A stretch of 64,000 nt of DNA, from assembly GCF_000143415.4 (NCBI RefSeq), contig NW_003314268.1:2620494-2684493 (forward strand). The letters are read 5' to 3'. This DNA comes from Selaginella moellendorffii. Lineage: Eukaryota > Plantae > Lycopodiophyta. This document shows positions 3,937 through 56,419 of the stretch, piece by piece (the stretch's first letter is position 1; every line of letters begins with the position of its first letter). The notes under the pieces were generated by a model that was given only the letters and a program-made list of their open reading frames with translations, did no database searches and had not been told where the DNA came from. The translations under genes and the position numbers were made by a program.

Positions 3937-4907
3937 AAGAGTTCAACTTTGTTCTAGTATATTCGAGTTGATCTGTGAGGCCGCTTGTATTTTTATAGCT
4001 CGAGGCAGCATACAATGCTTGAGTGGCCCCTCTTGGGACGGCATCTCTTTGTCCTTTAAAAGTTAGTCGAGGAAGTCGTTCCGTGTTTGTCAATTCCTTT
4101 TCTCTTCTGTAATGCTGGGACATAGAACAACACAGGAAGTGAAGCTGTGAATCCAGATGAGTAAAGACAACATTTCTAGTTTTTTCACAGTTTATATAAT
4201 ATATGAACTCATGCATCACCACGCGCTAGATTTCACTGCCACTGGGAAGAACAAAAATCCAAATAAATAGTTGGAACTTAACGAATATGAAAAAAGTTCC
4301 TACATATTAAAAGTCCATACGATACACAACTTTGCAGAAAACGCACCATGTTTATCATTGACAGTCTCAGGGCACCAAACACGTGAATAGACTCCAAAAC
4401 ATCTTCGTTCACCTTTTCATGATTCGAGATTCGTTCCCGTGGTTCTTCGAGGCAATTCTTCAGTGGAGGCCGCCACCCTCGATGGCAGCTGTTGTCATAC
4501 CCGTACCAATTGCATTGCGCGCAGCGAAATCCATCCCTCTGAAGCAGCGATGCGCCATCGCCTTGGTGATCCTCCCGACCTCCACTCCCACCGCTAGGTG
4601 TGCCTGGGCCTGGTTTTGACGCTCCAATCGAGTCTTATTGCTTGCCGATCATTGGAGCAATCGACTGGAAGTCGAGGGACTTGGAGGAAGGAGCAAGGGC
4701 AGATTCAGACATTTTATATCAAGGCTTGGACAATTTATATTTTATTGCTGGAACTCATGCAATGCCATGCAGCATCGCACGATACAGAAAACACGTCATC
4801 AGTGTCTTTATTCTTGTTTCCAGACCCTTGGCACTGCAGAGCGATGAAATCAAAGGCAATTACGATGCTGATTCTTAACTTGGCCTTACCCCGTGAAACT
4901 GGAGGTT

Positions 4908-5105
4908 TCAGTTGCGCCAGCAGCGATTGTTGCGCCAGCTCCAACCCTTCTGGCAACGGTGGCAACTGTTGTCATACCAATACCACCCCGACTGGCAGCG
5001 CTGGGCAGCAGCCTTTGCGATTCCTCCCACGTCCACGCCCATGGCCAGCATCATCACAAATATGGCGAGTGCCAAAAACAACACGAAGAAAGCCTTGTTC
5101 TCCAT
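4908..5105 (-). CDS. Small secreted Cys/Trp-rich peptide, copy 1 (65 aa)
   Basis: Hydrophobic signal region ending AKAAA, then mature QRCQSGWYWYDNSCHRCQKGWSWRNNRCWRN. TATA (gctataaata) ~65 bp upstream. ORF kept in five copies. Confidence 0.8.
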   Translation of the reverse strand: MENKAFFVLFLALAIFVMMLAMGVDVGGIAKAAAQRCQSGWYWYDNSCHRCQKGWSWRNNRCWRN

Positions 5106-5634
5106 GCTTTGCTGCTTGTTCTATTGGAGAGAAGTGGTTTGATCTGTGAGGCAGGAGGGGCTCATATTTATAGCTCGAGCCAGCACACAATGCTAGAGAG
5201 TTGTCGTGGGACGGCATTGCTTAGTCCTTATCTAATTTGGTTCCGTGTTTGAGAATTTCTTCTCGTTTCTATAATATCTCTCCAACCCTTCAAATGAGGA
5301 TCACAAATCGCCATGCTAGTTGAATATGGGACGGTTGAGATCATGTTAGATCGACGGCTTCGATTAATTAGTACGACAGCCAAGATTTTACACACTGTAC
5401 GGCTCAAATTGGTCCAGAAAGTTTTAAATGCACGGTCTAGAGTGTACAAGAATGACTACTATTCTTCTATTTGTACGAAAATACCATTCGTTTACCGTAC
5501 ACATTAAGTACTTAGCTTTCAGACACTTTAATGCCCTAAGAAAGGGGAAGTAAGCAAGCGCGAGTGTTCTCTGGTAAGCAAGCGAGTTTGAGCTGAAATA
5601 CTGCGACTTTCTCTGGTAAGCTTGATCTCTGACT

Positions 5635-7386
5635 ATGGCTCGCAAAATCTCCACGCCACCGCCCCCGCCGCCTCATCGGGAGCACGCGAGGAGGACGCCG
5701 CCGCCCAAACCATCGCCAAAGAGGGCACCGACAACTTCATCTCCGCCACCAAAGAGGTCTCCACCGGCGCCAGCCAAGAGGCACAGTCATTCACCACCAA
5801 AGCCCACAGAGGGACATCACTCACCAGCAAAGCCACCACCGAGTTCTCCTGAGCATCATGGAGCTGGACATCCACCACCGAGCTCTCCTGAGCATCATGG
5901 AGCTGGACATCCACCGCCGAGCTCTCCGCCCACCAAGGAACATCCAGCAGCAGAGCCAAACAGGCACCATGGACATCGACGAGCTGGTGATGGAGCTGCT
6001 ACAGGGCCGCCACCTTCTTCTTCGCCGCCCAACAAGGCCGACACTGTAACCTGGCGACCAAGGAGGGCCGGGCCGTCATCGCCACCACCTTCGAGCATAA
6101 TGTGGAACCCAAGGTCGCCATCGCCACCACCTTCGAGCATAACGTGGAACCCAAGGCCGCCATCGCCACCACCTTCGACCATAACGTGGCAACCAAGGCC
6201 CCTTGGCTTGGACACCTCTCCGCCTACGGCGTCGTCAGCACCATCTTCAGCAGCAGCAGCAGCTGCAGCTGCATTCGTGGCATCACCTGGTGTGCTCGCG
6301 GCAGGCATCGTTATGCTCCTGCTCGCACTGGTAGCTATCGTCACTGGAGTCTGGATACTCTTGAAGAGGAGAAGGAACAAGGTGCACAGCGACATCCACC
6401 ACGACAACATCCTGGTGGAGGATGGCCATGAGCCTAGCGGTGGCAACAGCGGCAGCAGCAGCAACCAGCGGGAGCATCTCATTACCAAAGTGGAGCCTCG
6501 ACCATCATCGCAGTTGAATGCCGGCAGGAAGAAGGCGGCTGCTGACCCCCTAATTCGCGAGCTCCTGAGGCCACCAAGGCGGCTGCCACCGTCTGCTCTT
6601 CCCGCTGGTGCTCGCCACAAGTCTGCATCCGGAAACGATCCACTCTTTCGTGCTGCTGATCCAGTGCATGGCCAGCAGGGAAGCCGGGGAAACGTCATTA
6701 TGGAGGATCCTCTCGTCGTCTTTCCTGCGTATGAAGTTGACGAGCAGCCAAGGCTGTTCTCAGCCACTCCGGAGGATGATCCACTTTTCTCGACTGGTGG
6801 CTACTCTCATCATCCAGCAGGCGAGAAAATGGCTGCAAACGAGCTCCCAGTGTGCATATCATCCCGATGCGACCGGGTTCCAGAGCAGTTTCATGGCCGG
6901 GAACAAGGACGAAAGGTGGCGGATCGTTCTGGCACCGTGTTCGATCCTGGAGATGTCGCAGCACTGGCAAAGAAGCGGGCTGAGATGGAGAAACAGATGC
7001 AGAAGTTCATCATGATGGAGCCCCGCATCCGGCCTTTTTTCCACAGGTTAGTAGTTTCTGCACTTGAGCTGACTGATGAAGCTGAATCGATCAGGAAGCG
7101 CGATGTGGAGAACAGCCCCGAGATCACGAGCGACGAGAACCTCGTCCGGAAGTTGACAGCCAATGATCCCAAGCGGGTCAAGAGTGATTTGGAGGTGGAG
7201 CCATCTGCTCCGGGGCACGCTTCTCTGACGGGTGAAAACGCCGATCAGGTACGAGCCTTTCTGTGAATTCTTCCACCTCTGAGAGAGACAGGGAACTTGA
7301 CGAGGTACGTTTCTTCGAAGTCAATTTGTATAGATGCTACTCTTTGATTGCAGGCACTGCAAGAGACAAAACATAAGAACAAGTAA
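5635..7386 (+). CDS. Pro-rich (extensin/PERK-like ectodomain) single-pass membrane protein without kinase, copy 1
   Basis: ORF 5635..7266 has an SPPP-rich N-terminus, TM GVLAAGIVMLLLALVAIVTGVWILL and KRRR. A possible intron 7249..7353 gives a short last exon ALQETKHKNK*. Confidence 0.75.
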
Positions 7387-9063: not shown

Positions 9064-9425
9064 AGGTCCAGATTTCCATAACCAAGCTTCCAGAGATTGA
9101 AATCCACGCTGCCGAGTATGAATTCCCAGACGAGGCTTTGCCAACCGACTCCGGCTATCTCCCCATTGACGAGTCGCCTTTTTTACGTTTACTACGAAGC
9201 GAGCAAGCCAGACACCGAGCTGGAAATCTCACCGATTATGGTGTGGCTCAACGGCGGACCCGGTTGCTCCAGCTTGATCGGTTGCTTCTACGAGCTCGGC
9301 CCATGGATTCTCCAAGAGAACTTCAGCTTGCAAAAAAATCCAGGAGCATGGAACCGAAGGTATCGTAGATTTTTGTTTTCGAAGTGACCGAAAGTTTTGT
9401 TTTGAACATATTTTGTCTATCCAGG
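9064..9425 (+). pseudogene. Duplicated SCPL exon fragment at the repeat junction
   Basis: Copy of 18894..19255 (WLNGGPGCSS) with an 11-bp frameshifting deletion. The sequence then switches to PPR-upstream DNA. Confidence 0.9.
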
Positions 9426-9587
9426 TGTGAAATCCAAAAATTCTTTTGTTCGTCATGGTATAATCTAAGAACTTAGGTGCAATGTTTTGGACATGGACCA
9501 TGAGGTTATCACTTTGATCGGGCGTGCTTCTACCATCTCGCAAGTGAAAAGAGGGTTGAGAGGAAACTCCACCGCCATGTCCAGCTC

Positions 9588-10464
9588 GTGAATCTAATCG
9601 TCAAAGCATATGCCAGGTGTGGCAGCCTCCAAGATGCCCTTTCTGCCTTTCAAACGCTCGAGTGTCCCAACCAGCACTCTTGGAATATCCTGCTCTCGGG
9701 CTACGTCCGAAATGGAGGTATTGCCCAAGCGGAGGAGCTGTTTGGAGTCTTGCCATTGCGAGATCGAGTGACTTGGAATACGCTGGTTGCAGCTTATGCT
9801 AATGCTGGGCATTTGCGTAAGGCAAAACAGCTGTTTGATACGATGCCGGACAGGGACATTGTTTCCTGGGCGTCACTTCTCCAGGCGTTTGTAAAGAAGG
9901 GAGATTTGAGCAGTGGAAAGAGGTTGTTTGATCTTATGCCCAGATGGAACGTTGTAGTCTTTAATTCCATGATATCTGGATTTGCAAACTTGGGTGATCT
10001 GTCCAGCGCCGAGAGTATGTTTGCATGGATCCCAGAAGCGACGCTCGTTACATGGACAACCATGGTGGCCGCGTTTTGCGAAAAGGGTCTAATAGCTAGA
10101 GCTAAAGACCTCTTCTCCAAAATGCCCGAAAGAAACATGCTAGCCTGCACTACCATGCTTGAAGCTTTTTCTCTGAAAGGTGATCTCACCGAAGCAAAGC
10201 GGGTCTTTGATTCCATGCCAGAGTGGCATCTTGTCTCGTTTACGGTGATGCTTCAGGCATATGGCAAAAGAGGGCATTTGGTAGAATGTATACGTTTGCT
10301 CCAAACCACGAGAAAAATGTGGTCTCCTACAATGCGGTGATTTCGGCATTTATTAACGCTGGAGACTTAGAGGGAGCCAAGTCTCGGTTTGGAACGTGAT
10401 TTTAGCAGCGTATTCCCAAGCTGGAGATTTGGAGGAGGCAAGGAGGCTGTTCTCGGCAATGAGT
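9588..10464 (+). pseudogene. PPR pseudogene, copy 2 (217-bp internal deletion)
   Basis: Same protein as 207..959 except D>H. Confidence 0.85.
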
Positions 10465-10888
10465 CCTAGATCCACCTCCTTGACGGAGAAGAGTGAATCT
10501 CTAGTGCAGTTCCTCACGTCGCAGGCCGTGATGACATCGATCCGCGCCAATGCACGCGCCATAGATCATCGCGATGACTGGCTTGCGGCAAATCTCGGGC
10601 GAGAGATTCGGCGCCTACATCAGGTGGTTCCAAGACTCCCTCTCGGCGGCCGCGAGCGCCATCGCCATCGCCATGGGCCGAGGAAGAGGAAGAAGAGGAT
10701 TTGGTGCTGAGGATGTTGGTGTCGATACCCGCGCAGAAATTGGAGCCATTCCCCGAGAGCAGCACCACGCGCACCTGTGGATCATCGTCCAGTGCTCGCA
10801 GCGATCGGGAGCTCGCGGAGGACGGCGTCGTCCAGGGCATTGCCCAGGTTGAGGAGGAGACGTGCTCCTCCACGCCCATAGCCATCAA
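10464..10888 (-). pseudogene. Dienoyl-CoA isomerase fragment, copy 2
   Basis: Same ORFs as 1300..1724. Confidence 0.8.
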
Positions 10889-11233
10889 GAACCCTAATTT
10901 TTTAATTTTAGCTCTTCAATCACGCAAAATCTTTGGGGGTTAAGAAAGTTTTTCTCTGAGTCTACAAGAATCCCATTCCTTGGATTATTCCAGAAGTTGT
11001 CTCTGTAATTGTCAACCTCCTTTAGATCCCTCCTTAGAACAGTCAAGTCCTGCAATAGATGCTAGAAAGTTAACCGAAATTGCTCACAATTCTTCCCAAA
11101 CCTCTTCGCTGGTGCACAAGCAAATTCATGTGAACGAATTTGCTGTTCATCAGTTAGATCACATCAGGTTGGTCAAATTTTGTGTTTATGTTTCTTGCTT
11201 TTCCCTCTTCTTCCTTGGGTGCAGTGTGCTGTC

Positions 11234-12785
11234 CCAGTTCGAGCTGTTCGAAGGCCACGCATGAACGTTGGAAGGCAAGCTTTCTCTGGAATCCTGCTTT
11301 TGCAGATTCGACATGAGCACGTAGAGCGCCGAGTCCCATGGTTCCATCTCCAAGAGTTTCTCTGCGGCACGATGCAGCATCGATGTTCTTGCCGCTGCCA
11401 TGAACTTTGCAAGCGCTGATCAAGCTCTTCCACGCGAGGAAATGCGGCTGGAAGGGCATCACCAGCAGCAGACCTTCGGCCTCGGCAACCAGCCCGGCTC
11501 GTCCCAGCACTGCCATCGCCTGGAAGTGAATCACATGGAGAAATGCTGTACTCGGCCACCATAGATCGAAAGTAGTTGAGTGCCACTCGGAGCTTCCGCA
11601 AGTCAGGAGAATCGCCTGGAAACTTATCTCGTTTCTCGTCTCGCCCTCCATCGCCATGCTGTCAAAAACTCAGCGTGGCCATTCTGTGCGCAGCCATGGA
11701 TCATCGCGTTCCGCGGCACAATGGAGAAGATGTTCCCAGCCTGCAAGAGATTCCCCCTTTGAGTGCTCGCGGCAATCCAGCTCGCTGTGTCTCTCACCAG
11801 CATGGCCGCGAAGAGCTCCCGCGCTGGACGAGGGCAATTGCTCTGGATGTAAGCTCCCAGCGTGTTTCACGCGACGCTATCATGCTGTGGCATTTGGTCG
11901 AACAAGATGGCACCCGTGCAAAGCAATTGACGCCACCATTGCCGTCTAAGCGACGTGATCGCGCTGTGGCATCCGTGCAAACATCTTCATGGCTTCTTCG
12001 AGGTGGCCGTGGTTGGAGTAGGCCAAGATCATGTCAGTCCACACCACGTCGCCGGGGAGGTCGATCGAAGAAAATGCGAGCTTCTTCGAGCTGGTTTCTC
12101 TCGGCCAGTGTTGTGATATTGTCGACCACGATGCAACGTTCTTCTGTGGCACATTTTACTGAAAAACTCCTTGGCTGTTTCATTATGCTCAAGCTGGGGG
12201 ACAAGAACAGTTCATCCCAGCTCGTTGGTTTCGGGGATTCCCATAAACAAACGTAGCGCGTCGTTAACAAGACCTTTTCTTGCATACCCAGTAACCATAA
12301 CAGCCCAAGAAACTATGTTGTGTTCTAGCATTCCATCAAAGACCCTTGATCCATATGCCCGTTATAAGCATATACTGTAATTAGAGAGTTCCAGAAAACT
12401 ACATCCCATTCTGGAACCTCATCAAACAATGCTCGGCATTCCTCCAAGTTTCCACGGTTTTCACAGGCCGTCATAAAAATCATCCATGCAGAAACATCCC
12501 TTTGTGGCATCTGATCAAATGGCTCTATTTTGCTTCCTCAAGATACCCACTTTGGGCATAAGCGCCAAACAGCAAGTTCCAGGAGAATCTGTTGGGCTCG
12601 TGGATGCTGATAAACACCTGCCAATGCTCGATCCGCGCGCTCATAGAGTTGGATGAGAAGATTTGCGAGGTACCTGCTGGATTAGTGGTGGGTGCTCCCA
12701 AGGATGAGCGCGTGGCGCCTTGACGCAATTCGATGCAAGCTGTGAGAAGTTGCGCGTAGTATGCGCGCTGCTCTAGATCGGCCAC
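11234..12785 (-). pseudogene. PLS-E PPR pseudogene, copy 2
   Basis: Colinear with 2070..3620. Confidence 0.85.
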
Positions 12786-14281
12786 CCGTGGTGAGGCGGG
12801 GGGACTACTGTCCGACCAGCAGGACCGGGCAGCACTGACTGCCGCGTTCTAGAGGCTTGAATCAGTACGTCTGCGTGGTAGTACAGGTGTTTCCCTGGAT
12901 AGAGCTTTGATTTTTCAATGCCACTTTTTCTTCATCTCTCTCCTATTTAAAGGCGCTTTCAAAGAACAAGCCAAACTTTGCAAAACAATCCCTGAGAGGA
13001 AACTATCGATCACAGAGCCGCCATACCAGCGCCGTCCTCGAGGGCATCGGTGGCAGGGAGCGCCTTTGCAACATGGCGAGAACCGAAAACAACACCAAGC
13101 AAGCCTATGAAACAAAGAGTTCAACTTTGTTCTAGTATATTCGAGAGAAGTGATTTGATCTGTGAGGCCGCTTGTATTTTTATAGCTCGAGGCAGCATAC
13201 AATGCTTGAGTGGCCCCTCTTGGGACGGCATCTCTTTGTCCTTTAAAAGTTAGTCGAGGAAGTCGTTCCGTGTTTGTCAATTCCTTTTCTCTTCTGTAAT
13301 GCTGGGACATAGAACAACACAGGAAGTGAAGCTGTGAATCCAGATGAGTAAAGACAACATTTCTAGTTTTTTCACAGTTTATATAATATATGAACTCATG
13401 CATCACCACGCGCTAGATTTCACTGCCACTGGGAAGAACAAAAATCCAAATAAATAGTTGGATCTTAACGATCTTTAGAACAGAAATGTGTGTTTCATTT
13501 CATTCTCGATCGAGAGAGGTTATACGTGGTTGGGGTATGTAATTGCTAAACTTTGTCTTGGACAAATTTGTCTCCACTACTGCGTCATATTTCCATCTTG
13601 TTGCTTTTCCAATTTCATTGACAAAAATATATTTAATATTATATATAATATAAATTTGAGTCTAGATTATATGAAAAAAGTTCCTATATATTAAAAGTCC
13701 ATACGTTGCAGAAAACGCACCATGTTTATCATTGACAGTCTCAGGGCACCAAACACGTGAATAGACTCCAAAACATCTTCGTTCACCTTTTCATGATTCG
13801 AGATTCGTTCCCGTGGTTCTTCGAGGCAATTCTTCAGTGGAGGCCGCCACCCTCGATGGCAGCTGTTGTCATACCCGTACCAATTGCATTGCGCGCAGCG
13901 AAATCCATCCCTCTGAAGCAGCGATGCGCCATCGCCTTGGTGATCCTCCCGACCTCCACTCCCACCGCTAGGTGTGCCTGGGCCTGGTTTTGACGCTCCA
14001 ATCGAGTCTTATTGCTTGCCGATCATTGGAGCAATCGACTGGAAGTCGAGGGACTTGGAGGAAGGAGCAAGGGCAGATTCAGACATTTTATATCAAGGCT
14101 TGGACAATTTATATTTTATTGCTGGAACTCATGCAATGCCATGCAGCATCGCACGATACAGAAAACACGTCATCAGTGTCTTTATTCTTGTTTCCAGACC
14201 CTTGGCACTGCAGAACGATGAAATCAAAGGCAATTACGATGCTGATTCTTAACTTGGCCTTACCCCGTGAAACTAGAGGTT

Positions 14282-14479
14282 TCAGTTGCGCCAGCAGCGA
14301 TTGTTGCGCCAGCTCCAACCCCTCTGGCAACGGTGGCAACTGTTGTCATACCAATACCACCCCGACTGGCAGCGCTGGGCAGCAGCCTTTGCGATTCCTC
14401 CCACGTCCACGCCCATGGCCAGCATCGTCACAAATATGGCGAGTGCCAAAAACAACACGAAGAAAGCCTTGTTCTCCAT
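14282..14479 (-). CDS. Small secreted Cys/Trp-rich peptide, copy 2
   Basis: Differs from copy 1 by M>T and K>R. TATA conserved. Confidence 0.8.
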   Translation of the reverse strand: MENKAFFVLFLALAIFVTMLAMGVDVGGIAKAAAQRCQSGWYWYDNSCHRCQRGWSWRNNRCWRN

Positions 14480-15010
14480 GCTTTGCTGCTTGTTCTATTA
14501 GAGAGAAGTGGTTTGATCTGTGAGGCAGGAGGGGCTCATATTTATAGCTCGAGCCAGCACACAATGCTAGAGAGAGTTGTCGTGGGACGGCATTGCGTAG
14601 TCCTTATCTAATTTGGTTCCGTGTTTGAGAATTTCTTCTCGTTTCTATAATATCTCTCCAACCCTTCAAATGAGGATCACAAATCGCCATGCTAGTTGAA
14701 TATGGGACGGTTGAGATCATGTTAGATCGACGGCTTCGATTAATTAATACGACAGCCAAGATTTTACACACTGTACGGCTCAAATTGGTCCAGAAAGTTT
14801 TAAATGCACGGTCTAGATTGTACAAGAATGACTACTATTCTTCTATTTGTACGAAAATACCATTCGTTTACCGTACACATTAAGTACTTAGCTTTCAGAC
14901 ACTTTAATGCCCTAAGAAAGGGGAAGTAAGCAAGCGCGAGTGTTCTCTGGTAAGCAAGCGAGTTTGAGCTGAAATACTGCGACTTTCTCTGGTAAGCTTG
15001 ATCTCTGACT

Positions 15011-16654
15011 ATGGCTCGCAAAATCTCCACGCCACCGCCCCCGCCGCCTCATCGGGAGCACGCGAGGAGGACGCCGCCGCCCAAACCATCGCCAAAGAGG
15101 GCACCGACAACTTCATCTCCGCCACCAAAGAGGTCTCCACCGGCGCCAGCCAAGAGGCACACAGAGGGACATCACTCACCAGCAAAGCCACCACCGAGTT
15201 CTCCTGAGCATCATGGAGCTGGACATCCACCACCGAGCTCTCCTGAGCATCATGGAGCTGGACATCCACCGCCGAGCTCTCCGCCCACCAAGGAACATCC
15301 AGCAGCAGAGCCAAACAGGCACCATGGACATCGACGAGCTGGTGATGGAGCTGCTACAGGGCCGCCACCTTCTTCTTCGCCGCCCAACAAGGCCGACACT
15401 GTAACCTGGCGACCAAGGAGGGCCGGGCCGTCATCGCCACCACCTTCGAGCATAATGTGGAACCCAAGGTCGCCATCGCCACCACCTTCAAGCATAACGT
15501 GGAACCCAAGGCCGCCATCGCCACCACCTTCGAGCATAACGTGGCAACCAAGGCCCCTTGGCTTGGACACCTCTCCGCCTACGGCGTCGTCAGCACCATC
15601 TTCAGCAGCAGCAGCAGCTGCAGCTGCATTCGTGGCATCACCTGGTGTGCTCGCGGCAGGCATCGTTATGCTCCTGCTCGCACTGGTAGCTATCGTCACT
15701 GGAGTCTGGATACTCTTGAAGAGGAGAAGGAACAAGGTGCACGACCACGACGACATCCTGGTGGAGTATGGCCATCAGCCTAGCGGTGGCAACAGCGGCA
15801 GCAGCAGCAACCAGCGGGAGCACCTCATTACCAAAGTGGAGCCTCGACCATCATCGCAGTTGAATGCCGGCAGGAAGAAGGCGGCTGCTGACCCCCTAAT
15901 TCGCGAGCTCCTGAGGCCACCAAGGCGGCTGCCACCGTCTGCTCTTCCCGCTGGTGCTCGCCACAAGTCTGCATCCGGAAACGATCCACTCTTTCGTGCT
16001 GCTGATCCAGTGCATGGCCAGCAGGGAAGCCGGGGAAACGTCATGATGGAGGATCCTCTCGTCGTCTTTCCTGCGTATGAAGTTGACGAGCAGCCAAGGC
16101 TGTTCTCAGCCACTCCGGAGGATGATCCACTCTTCTCGACTGGTGGCTACTCTCATCATCCAGCAGGCGAGAAAATGGCTGCAAACGAGCTCCCAGTGTG
16201 CATATCATCCCGATGCGACCGGGTTCCAGAGCAGTTTCATGGCCGGGAACAAGGACGAAAGGTGGCGGATCGTTCTGGCACCGTGTTCGATCCTGGAGAT
16301 GTCGCAGCACTGGCAAAGAAGCGGGCTGAGATGGAGAAACAGATGCAGAAGTTCATCATGATGGAGCCCCGCATCCGGCCTTTTTTCCACAGGTTAGTAG
16401 TTTCTGCACTTGAGCTGACTGATGAAGCTGAATCGATCAGGAAGCGCGATGTGGAGAACAGCCCCGAGATCACGAGCGACGAGAACCTCGTCCGGAAGTT
16501 GACAGCCAATGATCCCAAGCGGGTCAAGAGTGATTTGGAGGTGGAGCCATCTGCTCCGGGGCACGCTTCTCTGACAGGTGAAAACGCCGACCAGGTACGA
16601 GCCTTTCTGTATCCTGGTGAATTCTTCCACCTCCGAGAGAGACAGGGAACTTGA
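15011..16654 (+). CDS. Pro-rich single-pass membrane protein, copy 2
   Basis: 547-aa ORF. The indels relative to copy 1 within the main exon (21 and 6 nt) keep the frame. Confidence 0.75.
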   Translation: MARKISTPPPPPPHREHARRTPPPKPSPKRAPTTSSPPPKRSPPAPAKRHTEGHHSPAKPPPSSPEHHGAGHPPPSSPEHHGAGHPPPSSPPTKEHPAAEPNRHHGHRRAGDGAATGPPPSSSPPNKADTVTWRPRRAGPSSPPPSSIMWNPRSPSPPPSSITWNPRPPSPPPSSITWQPRPLGLDTSPPTASSAPSSAAAAAAAAFVASPGVLAAGIVMLLLALVAIVTGVWILLKRRRNKVHDHDDILVEYGHQPSGGNSGSSSNQREHLITKVEPRPSSQLNAGRKKAAADPLIRELLRPPRRLPPSALPAGARHKSASGNDPLFRAADPVHGQQGSRGNVMMEDPLVVFPAYEVDEQPRLFSATPEDDPLFSTGGYSHHPAGEKMAANELPVCISSRCDRVPEQFHGREQGRKVADRSGTVFDPGDVAALAKKRAEMEKQMQKFIMMEPRIRPFFHRLVVSALELTDEAESIRKRDVENSPEITSDENLVRKLTANDPKRVKSDLEVEPSAPGHASLTGENADQVRAFLYPGEFFHLRERQGT

Positions 16655-18757
16655 CGAGGTACGTTTCTTCAAAGGCAATCTCTATAGATGCTACTCTTTG
16701 ATTGCAGGCACTGCAAGAGACAAAACATAAGAACAAGTGAAAAACAAATAGAATGAAGAGCGAAAGCTCGTCATTTATCTGGCTTTCTCTTCAGTCCCTT
16801 CTATGTGCTTGAGTAAGTCACAGGAAGGTCTTCCTGGCCTTTCATCGGGGTACAAAAGTTTAGGAGGAGCCATCGATCATCGATATACAATATCCAGGAT
16901 GATCACAAACTGATTTTGTTAATTTTTATTCTGTTTTTATGAAATCTAAACTATCGATTCTTGAGTCGGTGATAATATTATTGCACTAATAGATATTAGA
17001 CAACACCAGCATTCGTACGGTGGTTTTCTCATGCAACTGAAATCAAATTTCACGGTGGTTTTGGTCGCGGAATGGCCATTTTGATGCGGTGTTTGTCATC
17101 GATGATGTTCTCCCTCGCGTGACTCCCAGATTGTAGGAAGAGCCAAAGGGATGTACATTCCACCAACACCAACATCACAACCGGTTTGTTCTTGACATTC
17201 GTGGCTGTGTTCAAGGATGGGACGATGAGCATGCGCAGGCAACAGCATATTTTTTGAGCTCTCTATGACATGATCCTAGGTGGCAGTAGTGCCACCTCAC
17301 TGTCTCTTGTATTCTAGCTATCCTTGAGTCATCCTTGCCCATTGTAGCTTTTGCATATCTCTTCAATCTTCAATGAAGATTGCAATAATTGCAGGCATTT
17401 TCGGCAATCTTGCTATTTAGTGTTAACTGATCATGTCAAAATTGAACGAGCCAAAAATGTATCTGTATCTCCGAAGTCCCTCTTCTAGCTCAAACTCAAA
17501 GTTTGATAGAACCAAGTCAGTAAAGAACTCTGGAGCATAATATTAGGAGTATATTACGCTGCAAGAATAGTGGTAAATTCTACATCGTCTCTTCTCACTG
17601 GGAGGCTGTTGACAATCTTTTGGGCAATCCAGCACCCAAACAGGTTGATCATGCAGCAGTAGTGATCCGTGACAGGACCAGAAAGTGGTCTATGCTTCAG
17701 CCATCCAATGGGAGGTATTGCCCGTTTAAAATTAATTAATTAATTATTATTTTCTGATATTAAATCTTGTTAAAGTTATAAATATTTGCAGACTATCCTC
17801 CTCTCTATTGCCATTATTTCGAGCTTTTGGGTTATATTATTATCATATAACTTTCTAAAGTTTCCTTAATCTTAGATTTGCAGGAAGTAATCTCTATTCG
17901 TGGTATTTAATAATTTTTTTTAGCTTTACCAATTTTTACTGTCGTTTCATTCTCATTTGCTGCCTAAAAGTTTTCCCAAAACCTTTAAAATTTTATTGTA
18001 GTTTTATTATTAAGCTCCTGGTTTTAGTACTGTTAAAGATCATACTTTTAATACTTAAAAGCCATTCCAGCATTCATTTAAGTAGTGTCTATTCTGTGAT
18101 TTTTAGTTTGAATACAAACCATATTTATAAGCTGGTAGAAATTTAAATAGATAAGGCTGAATGTCAAATACCTTGCAGGAATTATTCTCATCCAATGAGC
18201 CTAACCCTATCTCTTAACCTAGAGAGGACTGCCATGGAATGCAGAAATAGAGTGGAAAAATCCACAGGTCAAACATTATAAACTACTTTGTGGCTTGATT
18301 ATCATCAGCAGGGATGAAGGATGCTTTCTTCATGGAAGAAATCATTTACTTAAGCAAAGAACCAGTAAAGATTCGATTTCAAATAAAGAATTTAGGGTTC
18401 TTCCGGGGCTTCGATCGACGGGGCACACGTCGCTTGCCCCCGGCGCGGGCGATCGCGTCGCAATGCAGTTCGCCAGCGGCAGCAGCGCTGCGAGCAGTCC
18501 CAGATTCAACGTCCCGTTTCGAGAGATCAGGCTGCCAACGCCGAATCGGGGTCCCTCTTCTTGCTTTCGAACCACTGTTCGAAGCAAAGCTCGCAGGATC
18601 GTACGTATGGCCGCTGATTTCTTCTATCTTTGCCTTATTTGAGAATCTCCTCTCTCATTGGGATCGTTCCTTTAGTTCCTGCTTTGCTTTATCCTTCGTT
18701 AGTGAATTTCTTTTCCTTTTTTCTTTTCTTCTTCCTTCAAGCAAAAGCTGGGTGTTG

Positions 18758-26854: not shown

Positions 26855-28213
26855 TCATGTCAGCTCAAGTGCAGAGACTACTAACCTGTGGGGAAAAGGC
26901 CGGATGCGGGGCTCCATCATGATGAACTTCTGCATTTGTTTCTCCATCTCAGCCCGCTTCTTTGCCAGTGCTACGACATCTCCAGGATCGAACACGGTGC
27001 CAGAACGATCCGCCATCTTTCGTCCTTGTTCCCGGCCATGAAACTGCTCTAGAACCCGGTCGCGTCGAGATGATATGCGCACTGGGAGCTCGTTTGCAGC
27101 CATTTTCTTGCCTGCTGGATGATGAGAGTAGCCACCAGTCGAGAAGAGTGGATCATCCTCCGGAGTGGCTGAGAACAGCCTTGGCTGCTGGTCAACTTCA
27201 TTTGCAGGAAAGACGACGAGAGGATCCTCCATCATCACGTTTCCCCGGCTTCCCTGCTGGCCATGCACTGGATCAGCAGCACGAAAGAGTGGATCGTTTC
27301 CGGATGCAGACTTGTGGCGAGCACCAGCGGGAAGAGCAGACGGTGGCAGCCGCCTTGGTGGCCTCAGGAGCTCGCGAATTAGGGGGTCAGCAGCCGCCTT
27401 CTTCCTGCCGGTATTCAACTGCGATGATGGTCGAGGCTCCACTTTGGTAATGAGGTGCTCCCGCTGGTTGCTGCTGCTGCCGCTGTTGCCACCGCTAGGC
27501 TGATGGCCATACTCCACCAGGATGTCGTCGTGGTCGTGCACCTTGTTCCTTCTCCTCTTCAAGAGTATCCAGACTCCAGTGACGATAGCTACCAGTGCGA
27601 GCAGGAGCATAACGATGCCTGCCGCGAGCACACCAGGTGATGCCACGAATGCAGCTGCAGCTGCTGCTGCTGCTGAAGATGGTGCTGACGACGCCGTAGG
27701 CGGAGAGGTGTCCAAGCCAAGGGGCCTTGGTTGCCACGTTATGGTCGAAGGTGGTGGCGATGGCGGCCTTGGGTTCCACGTTATGGTCGAAGGTGGTGGC
27801 GATGGTGCCCTTGGGTTCCACGTTATGCTCGAAGGTGGTGGCGATGATGGCCCGGCCCTCCTTGGTCGCCAGGTTACAGTGTCGGCCTTGTTGGGCGGCG
27901 AAGAAGAAGGTGGCGCTCCATCATCAGCTCGTCGATGTCCATGGTGCCTCTTTGGCTCTGCTGCTCGATGTTCCTTGGTGGGCGGAGAGCTCGGTGGTGG
28001 ATGTCCAGCTCCATGATGCTCAGGAGAACTCGGTGGTGGCTTTGCTGGTGAGTGATATCCCTCTGTGGGATTTGCTGGTGAGTGACTGTGCCTCTTGGCT
28101 GGCGCCGGTGGAGACCTCTTTGGTGGCGGAGATGAAGTTGTCGGCGCCCTCTTTGGCGATGGTTTGGGCGGCGGCGTCCTCCTCGTGTGCTCCTGGTGAG
28201 GCGGGCGAGCCAT
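26855..28213 (-). CDS. Pro-rich membrane protein, copy 3 (C-terminal frameshift, possibly pseudogene)
   Basis: 452-aa ORF. A 1-nt insertion after ALELT truncates it, and homology continues to ~26670. Confidence 0.65.
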   Translation of the reverse strand: MARPPHQEHTRRTPPPKPSPKRAPTTSSPPPKRSPPAPAKRHSHSPANPTEGYHSPAKPPPSSPEHHGAGHPPPSSPPTKEHRAAEPKRHHGHRRADDGAPPSSSPPNKADTVTWRPRRAGPSSPPPSSITWNPRAPSPPPSTITWNPRPPSPPPSTITWQPRPLGLDTSPPTASSAPSSAAAAAAAAFVASPGVLAAGIVMLLLALVAIVTGVWILLKRRRNKVHDHDDILVEYGHQPSGGNSGSSSNQREHLITKVEPRPSSQLNTGRKKAAADPLIRELLRPPRRLPPSALPAGARHKSASGNDPLFRAADPVHGQQGSRGNVMMEDPLVVFPANEVDQQPRLFSATPEDDPLFSTGGYSHHPAGKKMAANELPVRISSRRDRVLEQFHGREQGRKMADRSGTVFDPGDVVALAKKRAEMEKQMQKFIMMEPRIRPFPHRLVVSALELT

Positions 28214-28800: not shown

Positions 28801-28980
28801 ATGAAGAACAAGGCTTTCTTCATGTTGTTTTTGGCACTCGCCATGTTTGTGATGATGCTGGCCATGGGCGTGGACGTGGGAGGAATCGCAAAGGCTGCTG
28901 CCCAGCGCTGCCAGTCGGGGTGGTATTGGTATGACAACGGTTGCCACCGTTGCCAGAGGGGTTGGAGCTGGCGCAACTGA
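28801..28980 (+). CDS. Secreted Cys/Trp-rich peptide, copy 3 (59 aa, last Cys lost; not in ORF track)
   Basis: MKNKAFFMLFLALAMF...QRCQSGWYWYDNGCHRCQRGWSWRN*. 18-nt deletion between gctggcgcaac direct repeats. Confidence 0.7.
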   Translation: MKNKAFFMLFLALAMFVMMLAMGVDVGGIAKAAAQRCQSGWYWYDNGCHRCQRGWSWRN

Positions 28981-30163
28981 AACCTCCAGTTTCACGGGGT
29001 AAGAAATTTGCCTTTGATGTCATCATTCTGCAGTGCCAAGCTCAATCAAGACACTGATGACGTGTTTTCTGTATCGTGGGATGCTGCATGGCATTGCATG
29101 AGTTCCAGCAATAAAATATAAATTGTCCAAGCCTTGATATAAAATGTCTGCATCTGTCCTTGGTCCCTCTCCTCTCTTCTCCAAATCCCTGACTTCCAAT
29201 CGATTGCTCCAATGATCGGCAAGCAATAAGACTCGATTGGAGCATCAAACCAGGCCCAGGCACACCTAGCGGTGGGAGTGAAGGTCGGGGGGAGCTGCGG
29301 AGGATGGTAGTGGGATGGATTTCGCTGCGTGCAATGCAATTAGTACGGGTGTGACAACAGCTGCCATCGAGGGTGGCGCTGGAATGGCAGCCGCTGCTTC
29401 CGCTGAAGAATTGCCAAAGCTCGGGCCTCAAAGAACCAGGAACGAATCTCGAATCATGAAAAGTGATATATATATAGAATAAGAGTATGTTTTGGAGTCT
29501 ATTCACGTGTTTGGTGCCATGAGACTGTCAATGATAAAATGGTGCGTTTTCTGCAAAGTTGTTGCTGCAGTGTAACGTTAGGAACTTTTTCATATAATCT
29601 GGACTCAAATTTATATAAACTGTGAAAAAACTAAAAATGTTGTCTTTACTGATCTGGAATCACAGCTTCACTTCGTGTGTTGTTCTATGTCCCAGCATTA
29701 CAGAAAAGAAAAGGAATTGACAAACATGGAACGACTTCCTCAGCTAACTTTTAAAGGACAAAAAGATGCCGTCCCAAGAGGCTAGCATTGTATGCTGCCT
29801 CGAGCTATAAATACGAGCGGCCTTACAGATCAAATCACTTCTCTCGAATATACTATACCACGAGGGCATCGGTGGCAAGGAGCGCCTTTGCAACATGGTG
29901 AGAACCGAAACAACACCAAGCAAGCCTATGAAACTATGGCGGCTCTGTGATCGTAAGTTTCCTCTCAGGGATTGTTTTGCAACGTTTGGCTTGTTCTTTG
30001 AAAGCGCATTTAAATAGGAGCGATATGAAGAAAAAGTGGCATTGAAAAATCCAGGAAAACACCCGTACTACCACGCAGACGTACTGATTCAAGCCTCTAG
30101 AACACAGCAGTCAGTGCTGCCCGGTCCTGCTGGTCGGGCAGTAGTTCCCCCGGCTCACCACGG

Positions 30164-34751: not shown

Positions 34752-37700
34752 TCAAGAACGAGTGGAACGAGAATGTGAATGAGAACGACGAGGAGGATGA
34801 GATGAGCGGCGAGGGATGGGAGATGGAGAAAACGAATGAGGACTGGGACGACTAGGATAGCGGCGGTGGAAGTCCTGAACAAGGTCAGGAGAATGAATCA
34901 GGTTGTCCGCAGGTTCCCAAGTGTGTTCTTCAGGCTCGTAACCCTTCCAGTCGACCAGATAGTAGAGTTTAGACCGTGAAATCTTGGAATCAAGGATGTC
35001 CTGAACCTCGTACTCAGACCCATCCTCGAGCTGCACTGGTGGAGGTGGAGGAATGACCCGATTGGGAATAGGACTGGGAATATAAGGCTCAAGGAGAGAG
35101 GAATGAAAAACGGGGTGAATTTGATATGAGGAGGGAAGTGCAAGGCGATAAGTGACAGGATTAATGATGGCAGTGATAGGGAAAGGATCGAGGCGTTTGA
35201 AATCAAGTTTTGGACAGGGCCTGGTGGTGGAGATATTTTGCCTGAGGAGCCAAACTTTATCCCCGATATTGTAAGGGGGACAATCCTGACGATGGACATT
35301 GGCAAATGTTTTGTGAGATTCCTGAGCACGATGGAGGTGGAAGGAGATGGAGTTGTGGATTTCTTGGAGGTTGGAGACAAATGCCTCAGAGCGGGGATTT
35401 GAATGAGAGGATTCGGATGGAGAAGGAAGTGAGAGATTGAATCGGGGATTTCAGCCAAAGTTTGCAAAGAAGGGGGAAATTCGAAGAGAGGAGTGGATAA
35501 AGTTGTTATAAGAGAACTCAGCAAGGGGAAGGATATCGAACCAGTTATCCTGATGATAGTTGATGAAGCACCTCAAGAATTGTTCCAACGTCTGAATCGT
35601 TCGCTCGGACTGCCCATCAGTTTGAGGATGATACGCCGAAGAGAGGTTGGCCTTCACTCCAAGCAGCTGCAAAAACCGTTGCCAGAAATGAGAGATGAAC
35701 TGAGGCCCCCGATCCGAAACCACATCTGTAGGAATCCCATGAAGTCGGAAAATTTCCCTGAATACCAGTTTTGCCATGTCCTCGCCCGAAAACTCCTTGG
35801 TACATGGCAAGAAGTGCGCCATCTTTGTGAAGCGATCCACCACGACTAAAATGCTGTTGAAGCCTCCAGAACTCGGAAGATCACTCAAAAAATCCATGGA
35901 GATGGATTCCCAAGGACCTGAAGGGACCGGAAGGGAACGAAGCAAACCTGAAGGAAGGTGGCGAGGTACCTTATTCCGGGCGCAAGTGTCACAAAAGGTG
36001 ACAAAAGCTTTGATGTAGTCGTCCATGTGAGGCCACCAAAAGTCCCGTGCAACTAGCTCATAGGTTTTCGCAATGCCAAAGTGACCAGCAGTCGGGCTAT
36101 CGTGGCACGCCATTAGGACCAACCTTCGAGCATCACCTTCAGGAACGTAAAGCTGCTCCCCACGGTATAATAAGCCATCTAAGAACTCGAACTCGTCAAA
36201 TCATCGGCAGTCGGGAGTCACAGGGTGTCCAGCCTGAAGATGGGGGAAAATGTCGATGGCGAGATCATCGGATTGAAGATTGTTTCTGATGGCATCCATC
36301 AAGGAGGAGTTCTGAGGGGCCAGGGAAATTGCCATAACTTGAAGCCGATTAGGACCGAGGATAATTTGATCCTGTTGATCGAAGGCAGGATTACCAGGCC
36401 TGAGACTGAGATAGGAGCGCCTTGAAAGAGCATCAGGAAGGCCTTGAAGCTTTCCAGGTCTATACTTGATAACAAAGTCAAACCGACTCAAGAATTGTGC
36501 CCACCTTGCTTGACGACGGCTTAAAACTCGAGAAGTGGCAAAGTACTCGAGATTTTTGTGATCCATCCAGACTGTTGTTTGATGGCCCGCCCCCTCCAAG
36601 AAACGGCCCCACTCTCCAAAGGAATCCACGATGGCAAGGAGCTCTTTGTCGTGGATTTCGTAATTGATCTCCGCAAGCTGGAATTTCCGAGAATGGAAAG
36701 CGACCGGATGAAGTTCTTGATCCGCTCCGAGTTGAGACAGCACAGCACCGATGGCAAAGTCGGAGGCGTCAGCCTCGATGAAGAAAGGTTGTGAGGAATT
36801 AGCATGGATCAAAACAGGAGCAGAATTGAAGGCTGCCTTGAGTGTGTCGAAGGCGTGCTGGGCAGCAGTAGACCAAGAGAAGGGGACATCCTTGCGAGTG
36901 AGATGCGTGAGAGGAAGGACAATGTCAGAGTAGTGATCAATGAATTTGCGGTAGAAGTTGGCGAAGCCAAGGAAAACCTGAACGTCCGACATTGATTGTG
37001 GAGGCTCCCACTCGAGAATAGTCTTGACTTTGGCAGGATCCATCGTGATACCCTCAGGAGTGACAATGTACCCAAGGAACTCCACAGACTGCTGATCGAA
37101 GGAACATTTCTCAAGCTTCGCGTATAGGCCGTGTTCTCGCAGCTTTGCCAGCACCTTGCGTACATGTTCGTTGTGCTCCTCCTGAGTTCTTGAGTAGATG
37201 AGGATGTCATCGAGGTAGACGATCACCATCTGATCAAGAAACTCCCGAAAGACGTCGTTCGCCATGTGTTGGAAAACTGCTGGAGCATTTGTCAAGCCAA
37301 ATGGCATGACAGTGTACTCGAAGTGGCCATAGCGGGTTCGGAACGCAGTCTTCCATTCATCACCAGGCCGGATCCGGATCAGGTTGTATGCGCCACGGAG
37401 GTCAATCTTGGTGAAGAAGCGGGCACCGCCGAGGCGTTCCAACAGGTCCGAGATCAGGGGCAGCGGATAACGGTTCCAAACAGTCACCTTGTTCAAACCT
37501 CGGTAATCGATGACTAGCCGCAAACTCCCATCCTTCTTCTTGACAAAGAAGGCAAGCGCTCCAGCCGGGGACTGCGAATGCCGAATGAACCCTGAGGCAA
37601 GGTTCTCATCCACGTACTCTTTGAGGGCCTTAAGCTCGGACGGGGATAACCCGTAGATAGGCCCCTAGGGAGGCGACGCTCCTTCCTGTAAATCAATGGG

Positions 37701-49000: not shown

Positions 49001-50986
49001 ATTTTTGGCAATCTTGCACTATTGAGTGTTAATTGATCATGTCAAAATTGAACGAGCCGAAAATGTATTTATCTCCAAAGTCCCTCTTCTAGCTTTTACA
49101 AACTCAAAGTTTGATAGAACCTAATCTGTGGTCAAAATGGAAGACAAGAACTCTGGAGCATATATAGTAGGATTATATACGCTACAAGAAAAGTGGTAAA
49201 TGCTTCATCGTCTCTTCTCACTGGTAGGCTCTTGACATCTCTTGGGCAATCCAGCACACCCGATTGATCACACAGCAGTAGGGATCATCTCAGCCATTGG
49301 GAGGTATTATCCATTTAAAATTAATTAATTTATAATAATTTTCTGTTATTAGATCTGTGCGCTGCTCTAGATCATCCACAGCCTGTTCTAGAGGCTTGAT
49401 TGAATCGGTAAGTAGTGCCATCTTACCGATGTTTTCCTGGAGACTGAAGATAGAGCTTTGATTTGTCACAAGGAAGTGCGCACTAAACGGTGGTCATTTC
49501 AGGACTTTATTAACTGTTTCTTCATATCGCTCCTATTTAAAGGCGCTTTCAAAGAACACGTTGTAGCCAAAATTTGCAAAACAATCCCCGAGAGGAAACT
49601 TAGAGGAGCTAGCTGCAGCGCTTTTGACGTCCACTCCCATGGCCAGCACCAGCAACATGGCGAGAACCGAAAACAACACCAAGCAAGCCTATGATCAACG
49701 AACTCTAGTATATTCGAGAGAAGTGATTTGATCTGTGAGGCCGCTCGTATTTATAGCTCGAGGCAGCATACAATGCCAGAGTGGTGCCTCTTGGGAACTT
49801 TGTCCTTTGAAAGTTATTCAAGGAAGTCGTTCCGTATTTGTCAATTCCTTTTCTTTTCTATAATGCTGGGACATAGAACAACACACGAAATGAAGCTGTG
49901 AATCCAGATGAGTAAAGACAACACTCTAGTTTTTTCACCATTGCTATAGATTTCACTGCCACTGAAAAGAACAAAAATCCAATAAATAGTTGGATCTTGA
50001 CGATCTCTGGAAGAGAAGTGTGTGTCATTTCATTTTCGATTGTGTTTTATATACGTGGTTGGTGTATGTAATTGCTAGACTTTGTCTTGGGAAAGAGATC
50101 AGATTTGTTGAAAAACTTGTCTCCACTAAAATATATATCATTTTAGTCAATATTATATAATATAATTTTGAGCCCAGATAGATTGACTTGGCTTTCTTTC
50201 TATTTTATCTGTCATGTTCTAAATTATCCTGTCATTCTGGTTCAAGTTTTTTGACTGAATATGTCACGTTTCTATATATTAAAAGTCCATACATTGTGAA
50301 CGCTACACTGCAACAACAACTCTCCAGAAAACGCACCATATTTATCATTGACAGTTTCAGACCCAGGGCATCAAAGACGAATAGACTCCAAAACATCTTC
50401 GTTCACTCTTATTCTACATATATCTCATCCAGGCTGTCAACCCAACTTTTCATGATTCGAAATTCGCTCCCGTGGTTCTTTGAGGCCCGAGGCTCGCGAA
50501 CTTTGGCAATTCTTCAGCAGATGCAGCGGCTGCCATTCCAGCGCCACCCTCGATGGCAGCTGTTGTCATACCCGTACCAATTGCATTGCACGCAGCGAAA
50601 TCCATTCCAGTACCAAGCGCTGCGCCATCGCCTTGGTGATGCCGCCGACCTCCATTCCCACCGCTAGGTGTGCCTGGGCCTGGTTTTGATGCTCCAATCG
50701 AGTCTTATTGCTTGCCGATCATTGGAGGAATCGATTGGAAGTCGTGGGATTTGGAGAAGAGCGGAGAAGGACCAAGGACAGATTCAGACATTTTATATCA
50801 AGGCTTGGACAATTTATATTCTATTGCTGGAACTCATGCAATACTATGCAACATCGCACGATACAGAAAACACGTTATCATTGTCTTTATTCTTGTTTCC
50901 AGACCCTTGGCACTGCAGGATGATTAAATCAAAGGCAATTATGATGCTGATTCTTAACTTGGGCTTACCCCGTGAAACGAGAGGTT

Positions 50987-51184
50987 TCAGTTGCGCGAGC
51001 AGCGATTGTTGCGCCAGCTCCAACCCTTCTGGCAACGGTGGCAACCGTTGTCATACCAATACCACCCCGACTGGCAGCGCTGGGCAGCAGCCTTTGCGAG
51101 TCCTCCCACGTCCACGCCCATGGCCAGCATCATCACAAATATGGCGAGCGCCAAAAACAACACGAAGAAAGCCTTGTTCTCCAT
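50987..51184 (-). CDS. Secreted Cys/Trp-rich peptide, copy 4
   Basis: 65 aa, ending DNGCHRCQKGWSWRNNRCSRN. TATA present. Confidence 0.8.
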   Translation of the reverse strand: MENKAFFVLFLALAIFVMMLAMGVDVGGLAKAAAQRCQSGWYWYDNGCHRCQKGWSWRNNRCSRN

Positions 51185-53391: not shown

Positions 53392-53589
53392 ATGGAGAAC
53401 AAGGCTTTCTTCGTGTTGTTTTTGGCACTCGCCATATTTGTGATGATGCTGGCCATGGGCGTGGACGTGGGAGGACTCGCAAAGGCTGCTGCCCAGCGCT
53501 GCCAGTCAGGATGGTATTGGTATGACAACAGTTGCCACCGTTGCCAGAAGGGTATGAGCTGGCGCAACAATCGCTGCTCGCGCAACTGA
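53392..53589 (+). CDS. Secreted Cys/Trp-rich peptide, copy 5
   Basis: 65 aa, ending DNSCHRCQKGMSWRNNRCSRN. TATA at ~53311. Confidence 0.8.
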   Translation: MENKAFFVLFLALAIFVMMLAMGVDVGGLAKAAAQRCQSGWYWYDNSCHRCQKGMSWRNNRCSRN

Positions 53590-56080: not shown

Positions 56081-56230
56081 ATGGAGAACAAGGCTTGCCT
56101 GGTGTTGTTTTCGGTTCTCGCCATGTTGCTGATGCTGCCATGGGAGTGGACGTGAGAGGAATCGCAAAGGCTGCTGCCCAACGCTGCCAGTCCGATAGTT
56201 GCCACCGATGCCCTCGGCGCTGGTTACAAC
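56081..56230 (+). pseudogene. Peptide paralogue B, best-preserved copy
   Basis: MENKACLVLFSVLAMLLML, frameshift, then MGVDVRGIAKAAAQRCQSDSCHRCPRRW. Other copies at ~13005-13112, ~29856-29957 and ~49610-49692. Confidence 0.8.
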
Positions 56231-56419
56231 GTGTTCTTTGAAAGTATGAAGTTAACGGATTATGGATAAAGTCGGTGAAATGTTTAGTCGAACCTCATGC
56301 ACAATGGAAACGCATTGACAAATCAAAGCTCTATCTTGTCAGTCTCCAGGAAAACACCGGTAAGATGATAGGAATCACTACCACGCAGACGTACCGATTC
56401 AAGCCTCTAGAACAGGCCG

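Follow-up and report, generated by a model that had tools for sequence, protein, structure and literature searches.

The 64,000 nucleotides of Selaginella moellendorffii analysed here (NCBI RefSeq assembly GCF_000143415.4, contig NW_003314268.1, positions 2,620,494 to 2,684,493 of the forward strand; hereafter the window) contain, on the minus strand, an open reading frame (ORF) of 65 codons designated copy c1. Is this frame a gene and, if so, what kind of peptide does it encode? The frame is a gene. Its family appears to represent a predicted secreted, cysteine-rich peptide of the hairpin-repeat kind in a distinct Trp-rich, two-unit form, and the function favoured for the product, with a rough probability of 45%, is that of a putative apoplastic defence peptide. 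The coordinates of the features are given in Table 1.

The core of the c1 product is a tail formed by two consecutive units, RCQSGWYWYDNSCH and RCQKGWSWRNNRCW. Its Cys residues, at positions 37, 48, 51 and 62, give the pattern C-x10-C-x2-C-x10-C, five Trp are present (41, 43, 55, 57 and 63), and the calculated pI is 9.6 with a charge of +4.8 at pH 7. The two units have 8 of 14 residues and 25 of 42 nucleotides in common, a residue match that 100,000 shuffles of the 28 residues never reached (p<1e-5). A first-pass annotation, made from the letters alone, had described a tail of 31 residues with this Cys pattern, five Trp, a charge of about +5 and units of period 14, and each of these countable details agrees with the ORF and the calculation; its coordinates for the mature peptide, 4908-5003, include the stop codon. 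A polyprotein releasing single hairpins was considered and rejected, the units being two residues apart without spacer or processing site.

A chance ORF is excluded because the coding sequence (CDS) is kept better than its flanks, the Cys are kept in six copies and the strand is transcribed. Between c1 and the paralog c3 only 4 of 198 CDS nucleotides differ, whereas the 300-nt flanks are 87% identical downstream and 62% upstream. No substitution affects the four Cys, G40, G54, W41, W43 or W57, either among six intact copies or among the expressed variants. Two long plus-strand ORFs over the same region (4598-5149 and 4893-5252) were rejected, since intron orientation, the TATA box and conservation at codon level favour the minus strand.

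The window comprises four intact copies of the family, one copy from which the last Cys is missing, and six or more decayed relics, identified by tblastn and translation over the 64 kb, and all of them lie within a patchwork of direct and inverted segmental duplications. Further copies were identified beside other PERK-like paralogs at loci L013 and L014. A second paralog type, with the pattern ...RC-GGWxWDGFRC-xQC-NWYGYDNSCH-RGWRWNGSRC and more hairpin units than c1, is represented in the window by frameshifted or stopped relics, one about 400 bp downstream of c1 and equivalents after the other copies.

Transcription was assessed with stranded RNA sequencing, as raw reads of two runs (X39 and X40, two RNA samples whose tissue and condition are unrecorded) and two contig sets (X15 and X17), all compared with positions 4200-5700. 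Read cover is limited to 4404-5117, with the first mate on the plus strand save for a handful of reads. The intron joint 4833/4890 (CT..AC on the plus strand) is crossed by 12 reads in X39, by 65 reads in X40 and by contigs of X15 and X17; since this joint is GT..AG in the minus-strand sense, the RNA belongs to the minus strand. Depth over the c1 CDS peaks at 695 in X39 and 2574 in X40 and is zero from 5169 onward. The TATAAATA box upstream of the start codon probably serves as a promoter element, judging from its letters and position. The family total is about 254 (X39) and 898 (X40) reads per kb per million, a 3.5-fold difference between the samples. Over the longer-repeat relic at 4404-4658 the same-strand depth is 7-18, again with paralog-type differences, and these weak reads stem from an intact relative elsewhere.

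Most of this RNA does not come from c1. Reads only 95-99% alike to c1 account for 812 of 820 in X39 and 2860 of 2894 in X40, and those at least 99% alike for 8 and 34, respectively. Relative to c1 the reads carry K53R (about 99%), I15M (82-98%), F6L and F7L (about 75-88%) and S47G (about two-thirds), with minor variants at W63S, S56 and I29L; none of these differences affects a Cys. Upstream of 5116 the reads diverge wholly from c1, and the dominant tags of their 5' and 3' untranslated regions (UTRs) are absent from the window, L013 and L014. The c1-type share at diagnostic sites is 0.5-6%, with the exception of site 5061 in X40 (18%). Because nearly all reads carry paralog-type differences and UTR tags foreign to the window, c1 supplies roughly 1% or less of the family transcripts and is nearly silent in X39 and X40, and paralogs outside the window are the source of the abundant transcripts. 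The expectation that the locus is transcribed holds for the family, which is strongly transcribed from the c1 strand, and hardly for c1 itself. As a separate observation, run X15, labelled organism B, contains contigs at least 99% identical to the c1 locus, including a 275-nt contig (4489-4763) which bridges the 3' end of c1 and the downstream relic; this run may contain genomic DNA, or may be the same species under another label.

These figures bear on whether c1 is a silent, recently duplicated copy turning pseudogene, intact only through its youth and contributing nothing to the phenotype. This is a serious contender, at somewhat less than even odds. It agrees with the few reads at least 99% alike to c1, with the low reference-type share at diagnostic sites, with read UTR tags that occur in neither the window, L013 nor L014, and with the state of the neighbours, of which c5 and the relics are already crippled. 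However, the ORF, the TATA box and the splice sites of the intron are intact in c1, a few reads match it exactly, and the silence is that of two RNA samples of unrecorded tissue and condition.

The leader of c1 has the n/h/c layout of a signal peptide. Residues 4-20 show a Kyte-Doolittle hydropathy above 2, and small residues occupy -3/-1 before G23, A32 and A34, so that the -3/-1 rule permits cleavage after any of the three, with Gln35 as one candidate start of the mature peptide among these. A pyroglutamate at Gln35, suggested in the first-pass annotation, is speculative. The segment GVDVGGIAKAAA that follows the hydrophobic core may be either a c-region or a short propeptide. The leader segment is conserved in the paralogs and in a pectinesterase model of the same species (P0012, RefSeq XP_024531936.1), and would route the product to the secretory pathway. 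Sub-threshold Pfam matches of the precursor to POPLD and Sar8_2 fall on the hydrophobic leader and were rejected. An uncleaved signal anchor, which would make the product a type II membrane protein with its hairpins exposed at the cell surface instead of released, would suit the hydrophobic core of 18-19 residues (A5-G23), predicted as a single helix (3-21), and metagenomic look-alikes of the peptide are indeed membrane-anchored, though at the C-terminus. Such an anchor is very improbable, given that the core is followed by the Gly-rich helix breaker GVDVGG and by AKA and AAA, classic -3/-1 sites, and that this segment is conserved in the paralogs and in P0012.

AlphaFold predicts for c1 the leader helix, a weaker helix at 26-35 and two beta-hairpins (41-44/47-50 and 55-58/61-64), a prediction shared by a single-sequence input and a small alignment; over the hairpins the predicted local distance difference test (pLDDT) score is 80-86. 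By analogy with known hairpin modules, each unit would form a beta-hairpin closed by a disulfide of its own (C37-C48 in unit 1, C51-C62 in unit 2); the W-x-W pairs would pack against the disulfides and the Arg and Lys side chains would be exposed. With the whole precursor as query, the leader helix dominated the fold search, which was uninformative. Structure searches with c1 gave noise-level matches only, all of the disulfide-stapled hairpin kind. The nearest structure is the tumour necrosis factor receptor (TNFR)-type domain of UL144 (6nyp_E; Z score 2.3, root mean square deviation 2.1 A over 33 residues). The cysteine-rich domain of mGluR/CaSR receptors gives template modelling (TM) scores of 0.5-0.55 (mGlu2 0.53-0.55), and other neighbours are R-spondin furin repeats and a granulin-like conotoxin. 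In the ESM Atlas the structural neighbours are C-type lectins and Cys-repeat proteins of Myxococcota and archaea.

The traits of c1 fit a putative secreted cysteine-rich peptide, with a small mature part, four invariant Cys and a family that is transcribed with a spliced 3'UTR. The reading as an apoplastic defence peptide is preferred because the product is small, rigid, cationic, aromatic-rich and abundant, and because the family is locally amplifying and decaying. Defence peptide families turn over by local duplication and decay, and the corresponding traits here are the charge of +4.8 and pI of 9.6, the intact, crippled and relic copies in 64 kb plus those of L013 and L014, and an abundance that is high and variable. 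In this role the peptide would bind to the anionic envelopes of microbes and perturb them, acting as a rigid, cationic, aromatic mini-protein. Several points weigh against this reading. At the diagnostic K53 codon the share of c1 is 0.5-1.3% of reads, and the depth over the 5'UTR of c1 itself is 0.8, compared with 316-1166 in the next bin. The hydrophobic core of the leader is long enough for an uncleaved signal anchor, and the disulfide pairing is drawn by analogy. The ratio of nonsynonymous to synonymous substitution (dN/dS) among the copies, about 0.3-0.7, derives from very few changes and points clearly to neither purifying nor diversifying selection. Finally, the Trp residues may do no more than build the core in a mini-protein that has no room for a normal hydrophobic one, and Trp-richness therefore does not imply membrane insertion.

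The known scaffold nearest in motif is the C0-C0' hairpin of long-form C-type lectins (6a7t and the snaclec agglucetin, 3ubu), where the two Cys of the hairpin make one stapling disulfide. The C-x10-C spacing is common to both, as is the arrangement C-x-x-G-W-x-[WY/aromatic]-x-x-x-x-C-[YH], which in 6a7t reads CQSGWEWFGGSCY. Both units of c1 match the long-form hairpin motif C-x-x-G-W-x6-C-[YF] in residues and spacing. The first-pass annotation had noted this likeness, and it is borne out: N-terminal hairpins of C-type lectins were the best, non-significant, PDB sequence matches to c1 (expectation value, E, 0.8-3.7) and C-type lectins rank among the top ESM Atlas neighbours. However, a C-type lectin domain has about 115-130 residues, a WIGL core and C1-C4/C2-C3 disulfides, whereas only the 13-residue hairpin motif is matched, the mature part of c1 has 31 residues and no Pfam Lectin_C match was identified in it. 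In long-form lectins the hairpin is a structural appendage, whereas in c1 it is a stand-alone tandem module.

The TNFR A1, furin-like repeat and NCD3G domains comprise, like c1, short disulfide-stapled hairpins in series with C-x2-C junctions. Unlike c1, they contain 6-9 Cys with inter-hairpin disulfides, lack W-x-W and are parts of large receptors. None gave a significant match to c1 (PDB sequence E 3.7-9, Foldseek E of at least 2.9, VIA-align Z of at most 2.3, no Pfam match), these structure scores being within the noise range for a 35-residue model, and the likeness is one of architecture only. DUF4215, the Myxococcus cysteine-rich repeat, is a Cys-Gly-aromatic hairpin repeat, as are both c1 units, and scores 13.5 and 14.2 bits (E 0.05-0.09) on the mature parts of c1 and c3 and 9.8 bits on the precursor, against a gathering threshold of 27. 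DUF5874 matches only the unit of P0012 (19.3 bits, E 0.0015; gathering threshold 27.1), with no match for c1 or c3. The c1 units are much richer in Trp and Arg than either family. Since the likenesses in PDB, structure and Pfam searches are all of this kind, each unit is read as a Trp-enriched version of a generic one-disulfide hairpin module, a relationship seen only at sub-threshold level.

The animal beta-hairpin antimicrobial peptides tachyplesin, protegrin, arenicin and gomesin are short, cationic, aromatic-rich, disulfide-stapled and made with a signal peptide. They serve as the functional model for the defence reading and have no sequence relationship to c1. Tachyplesin-type peptides are single hairpins of 17-21 residues with in-register cross-strand disulfides, whereas c1 has two tandem hairpins with C-x10-C staples of lectin/TNFR type. 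Among plant peptides, the Ib-AMPs of Impatiens balsamina are 20 residues long, basic and rich in Trp and Arg, with four Cys in two disulfides; they follow a CC-x8-C-x3-C pattern and are freed from a multi-peptide precursor with spacers. No sequence similarity to c1 exists and the Cys pattern is another. Defensins (8 Cys), thionins (6-8), snakins (12), non-specific lipid transfer proteins (nsLTP; 8), heveins (8) and knottins (6) were rejected for c1, which has only four Cys in another spacing and no match to these families in Pfam even at E up to 10. The alpha-hairpinin class was also rejected, the spacing being x10/x2/x10 and not the C-x3-C of two antiparallel helices, with four predicted strands and no helix in the Cys domain. 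The earlier statement that the spacing departs from the defensin, thionin, LTP, hevein, snakin and alpha-hairpinin patterns is therefore correct.

When 1.84 billion representatives were searched exhaustively with HMMER, six matches emerged. The best (E 4e-10) was P0012, annotated as 'putative pectinesterase 11'. Over its first 52 residues it has 59% identity with the leader, unit 1 and C-x2-C-PKG junction of c1, and the hairpin unit is followed by a poly-Asp linker and the pectinesterase domain. The N-terminal 56 residues of P0012, used as query among 5.8 billion clusters, retrieved only P0012 itself. The fusion is either a real module-enzyme protein or a chimeric gene model; P0012 stems from one automated prediction, and the Cys of its N-terminal part are odd in number.

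Other matches were metagenomic. P0017 and P0018 (83-85 residues; E 2e-4) have the two-unit layout of c1 plus a C-terminal membrane anchor, and P0018 is identical to c1 at 14 of 24 residues, including GWYWYDN-CHRC-KG. P0013 and P0016 (581-1041 residues; E 1.5e-5) are large surface proteins with immunoglobulin (Ig)-like and PKD domains and three single GWYWY units each; one of these units contains the exact decapeptide GWYWYDNSCH, with a chance expectation of about 7e-5 in the library. All four metagenomic GWYWY proteins (P0013, P0016, P0017 and P0018; L002, L005, L006 and L007) are encoded on low-GC contigs with prokaryote-style gene packing. In them the GWYWY core lies beside a membrane anchor, singly or in three copies, or forms a two-unit domain resembling that of c1. 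They differ from c1 in their C-x11-C and C-x12-C spacing, in their acidic context and in being membrane-anchored or large surface proteins. No relative was identified in 185,579 reference prokaryote genomes (GTDB) or in viral contigs; two prokaryote genome matches were rejected as a chance SGWYWYDN string in a membrane permease without the second Cys. A scan of metagenome contigs gave only P0013-like proteins plus a chance match in a lysozyme-like ORF. The metagenomic matches are few and short Cys/Trp-rich strings inflate scores, and the likeness may reflect either convergence on a stable hairpin or common descent.

These relatives bring in a second function for the product, that of a putative carbohydrate- or cell-wall-binding mini-module and not a microbe killer, in which the W-x-W strips of the two hairpins would form an aromatic platform on pectin, cellulose, chitin or glucan. 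Alternating aromatics on beta-strands are typical of binding faces. The only annotated protein with a homologous N-terminus is the pectinesterase model, in a layout of binding module on enzyme, but a single automated model with an odd Cys number, and with no second protein carrying the fusion, may be chimeric. In the metagenomic relatives the hairpin is part of Ig-like/PKD surface proteins and adjoins a membrane anchor, and the second unit of P0018 matches Peritrophin-A (CBM_14) at E 0.002 and 18.8 bits; this match is, however, below the cut-off of 22.1 and in a metagenomic protein, not in the plant peptide. The strong positive charge is also atypical of such modules, and glycan binding, the main rival of the defence reading, is considered clearly less likely than it. 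Less likely still is the broader proposal that the 14-residue Trp/Cys hairpin is an unrecognised stand-alone binding module, a minimal aromatic-ladder domain for glycans of the cell envelope or cell wall. Selaginella would use this module as free secreted peptides and also fused to a pectinesterase, and ancient horizontal transfer or deep ancestry would link it in origin to the GWYWYDNxCH modules on surface proteins of uncultured prokaryotes.

The family is absent from the GenBank annotation of the locus. The GenBank record GL377572.1 (positions 2625504-2647233, assembly GCA_000143415.2; L001) is 100% identical to window positions 5011-26740, and no gene is called in it at the position of c2 (9275-9469 of this segment). 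No relative of similar length to the 65-residue precursor was identified among the 5.8 billion protein clusters, in a search that covers lengths of 36-114 residues; on both grounds the family is unannotated here, with the exception of the pectinesterase fusion model. The feature search of the ESM Atlas gave no usable match for the c1 precursor or for residues 35-65. A literature search gave no description of the family, of its motif strings or of DUF5874, and in reviews and screens of plant cysteine-rich peptides the Cys pattern of c1 is not described. The family is shown as lineage-restricted to Selaginella moellendorffii by the searched databases. No Pfam family reached threshold for the c1 precursor or for the mature parts of c1 and c3, so the Pfam check for an already described family returned nothing at threshold. 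The proposal of a new plant cysteine-rich class stands in part: neither a Pfam family at threshold nor, among the clusters searched, a relative of similar length was identified, but the scaffold has a sub-threshold precedent in one-disulfide hairpin modules.

Each peptide copy is placed head-to-head with a PERK-like ORF and co-duplicated with it. Many plant cysteine-rich peptides are ligands, and the product could be an extracellular signal acting on a membrane receptor in the manner of EPF, RALF or LURE; such a receptor could relate to the co-duplicated proline-rich, kinase-less PERK-like protein. Both genes are divergent and about 530-690 bp apart in c1, c2, c5, L013 and L014, although a segmental duplication would be expected to co-duplicate any neighbours within it. 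In X39 and X40 the stretch 5118-5700, the first 66 nt of the PERK-like ORF included, has no read on either strand, and hundreds of reads per kb per million together with fast gene birth and death are unusual for ligands. A putative signalling role is accordingly improbable.

No living lineage of vascular plants is older than the lycophytes, whose secreted peptides have hardly been explored. The family is missing from the locus annotation and has no full-length match in the searched protein databases, yet its transcripts are among the abundant ones in X39 and X40. If antimicrobial, it adds a compact, easily synthesised double-hairpin scaffold with two disulfides to the plant defence peptides; if glycan-binding, it would rank among the smallest carbohydrate-binding folds known. 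Either way, abundant tiny genes escape standard annotation, and a species of about 4.06 kDa with two disulfides is a target for Selaginella peptidomics.

Table 1. Position of the c1 gene, its parts, its paralogs and the PERK-like frames in the window.
Feature	Position	Strand	Description and basis
c1 complete intronless CDS	4908..5105	minus	65 codons + stop (4908-4910); ORF list and translation; stranded read cover 4761-5117
c1 leader, residues 1-34	5004..5105	minus	MENK n-region, hydrophobic core A5-G23 (18-19 residues), then GVDVGGIAKAAA
c1 Cys/Trp/Arg-rich tail, residues 35-65	4911-5003	minus	Q, then RCQSGWYWYDNSCH, then RCQKGWSWRNNRCW, then RN
Hairpin unit 1, residues 36-49	4959..5000	minus	RCQSGWYWYDNSCH; translation; predicted strands 41-44, 47-50; pLDDT about 86
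Hairpin unit 2, residues 50-63	4917..4958	minus	RCQKGWSWRNNRCW; translation; predicted strands 55-58, 61-64
Intron in 3'UTR	4834..4889	minus	56 nt, GT..AG; starts 18 nt past stop codon
Distal 3'UTR	4735..4833	minus	transcript end near 4735-4760; depth about 0-4 in bin 4710-4760
TATAAATA box (putative TATA box)	5165..5172	minus	about 60 nt upstream of ATG; read from sequence; read cover stops at about 5117-5140
Paralog c2, intact	14282..14479	minus	M18T, K53R; inside 97-99% identical tandem unit 9382-18002; tblastn, translation
Paralog c3, intact	50987..51184	minus	I29L, S47G, W63S; tblastn, translation
Paralog c4, intact	53392..53589	plus	I29L, W55M, W63S; inverted relative to c3; tblastn, translation
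Paralog c5	28801..28980	plus	59 codons; in-frame six-codon loss takes out fourth Cys
Pseudogene relic	56081..56241	plus	frameshift; GWYWYDN stretch deleted
Leader-only relic	49533..49682	minus	keeps leader alone
Longer-repeat relic	4404..4658	minus	frameshifted; tblastn and three-frame translation
Longer-repeat relic equivalents	13847-13971, 50523-50667, 29266-29403, 53904-53969		after other copies
PERK-like ORF	5635-7266	plus	543 codons; up to 94% identity to Selaginella moellendorffii hypothetical proteins
PERK-like ORF, other copy	15011-16654	plus	proline-rich, single-pass, kinase-less
PERK-like ORF, other copy	26855-28213	minus	proline-rich, single-pass, kinase-less
PERK-like ORF, other copy	59086-59859	minus	proline-rich, single-pass, kinase-less

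The rest of the window comprises elements of other kinds. A pentatricopeptide-repeat coding sequence, split over two overlapping frames, was identified at 207-1546 and 9588-10340, both on the plus strand; it is probably a frameshifted pentatricopeptide-repeat gene and was duplicated along with the segment. At 34898-37613 on the minus strand lies the pol region of a retrotransposon, encoding reverse transcriptase and RNase H domains. The GC skew is strong between about 34 and 46 kb, and 100 N at 43628-43727 mark an assembly gap.

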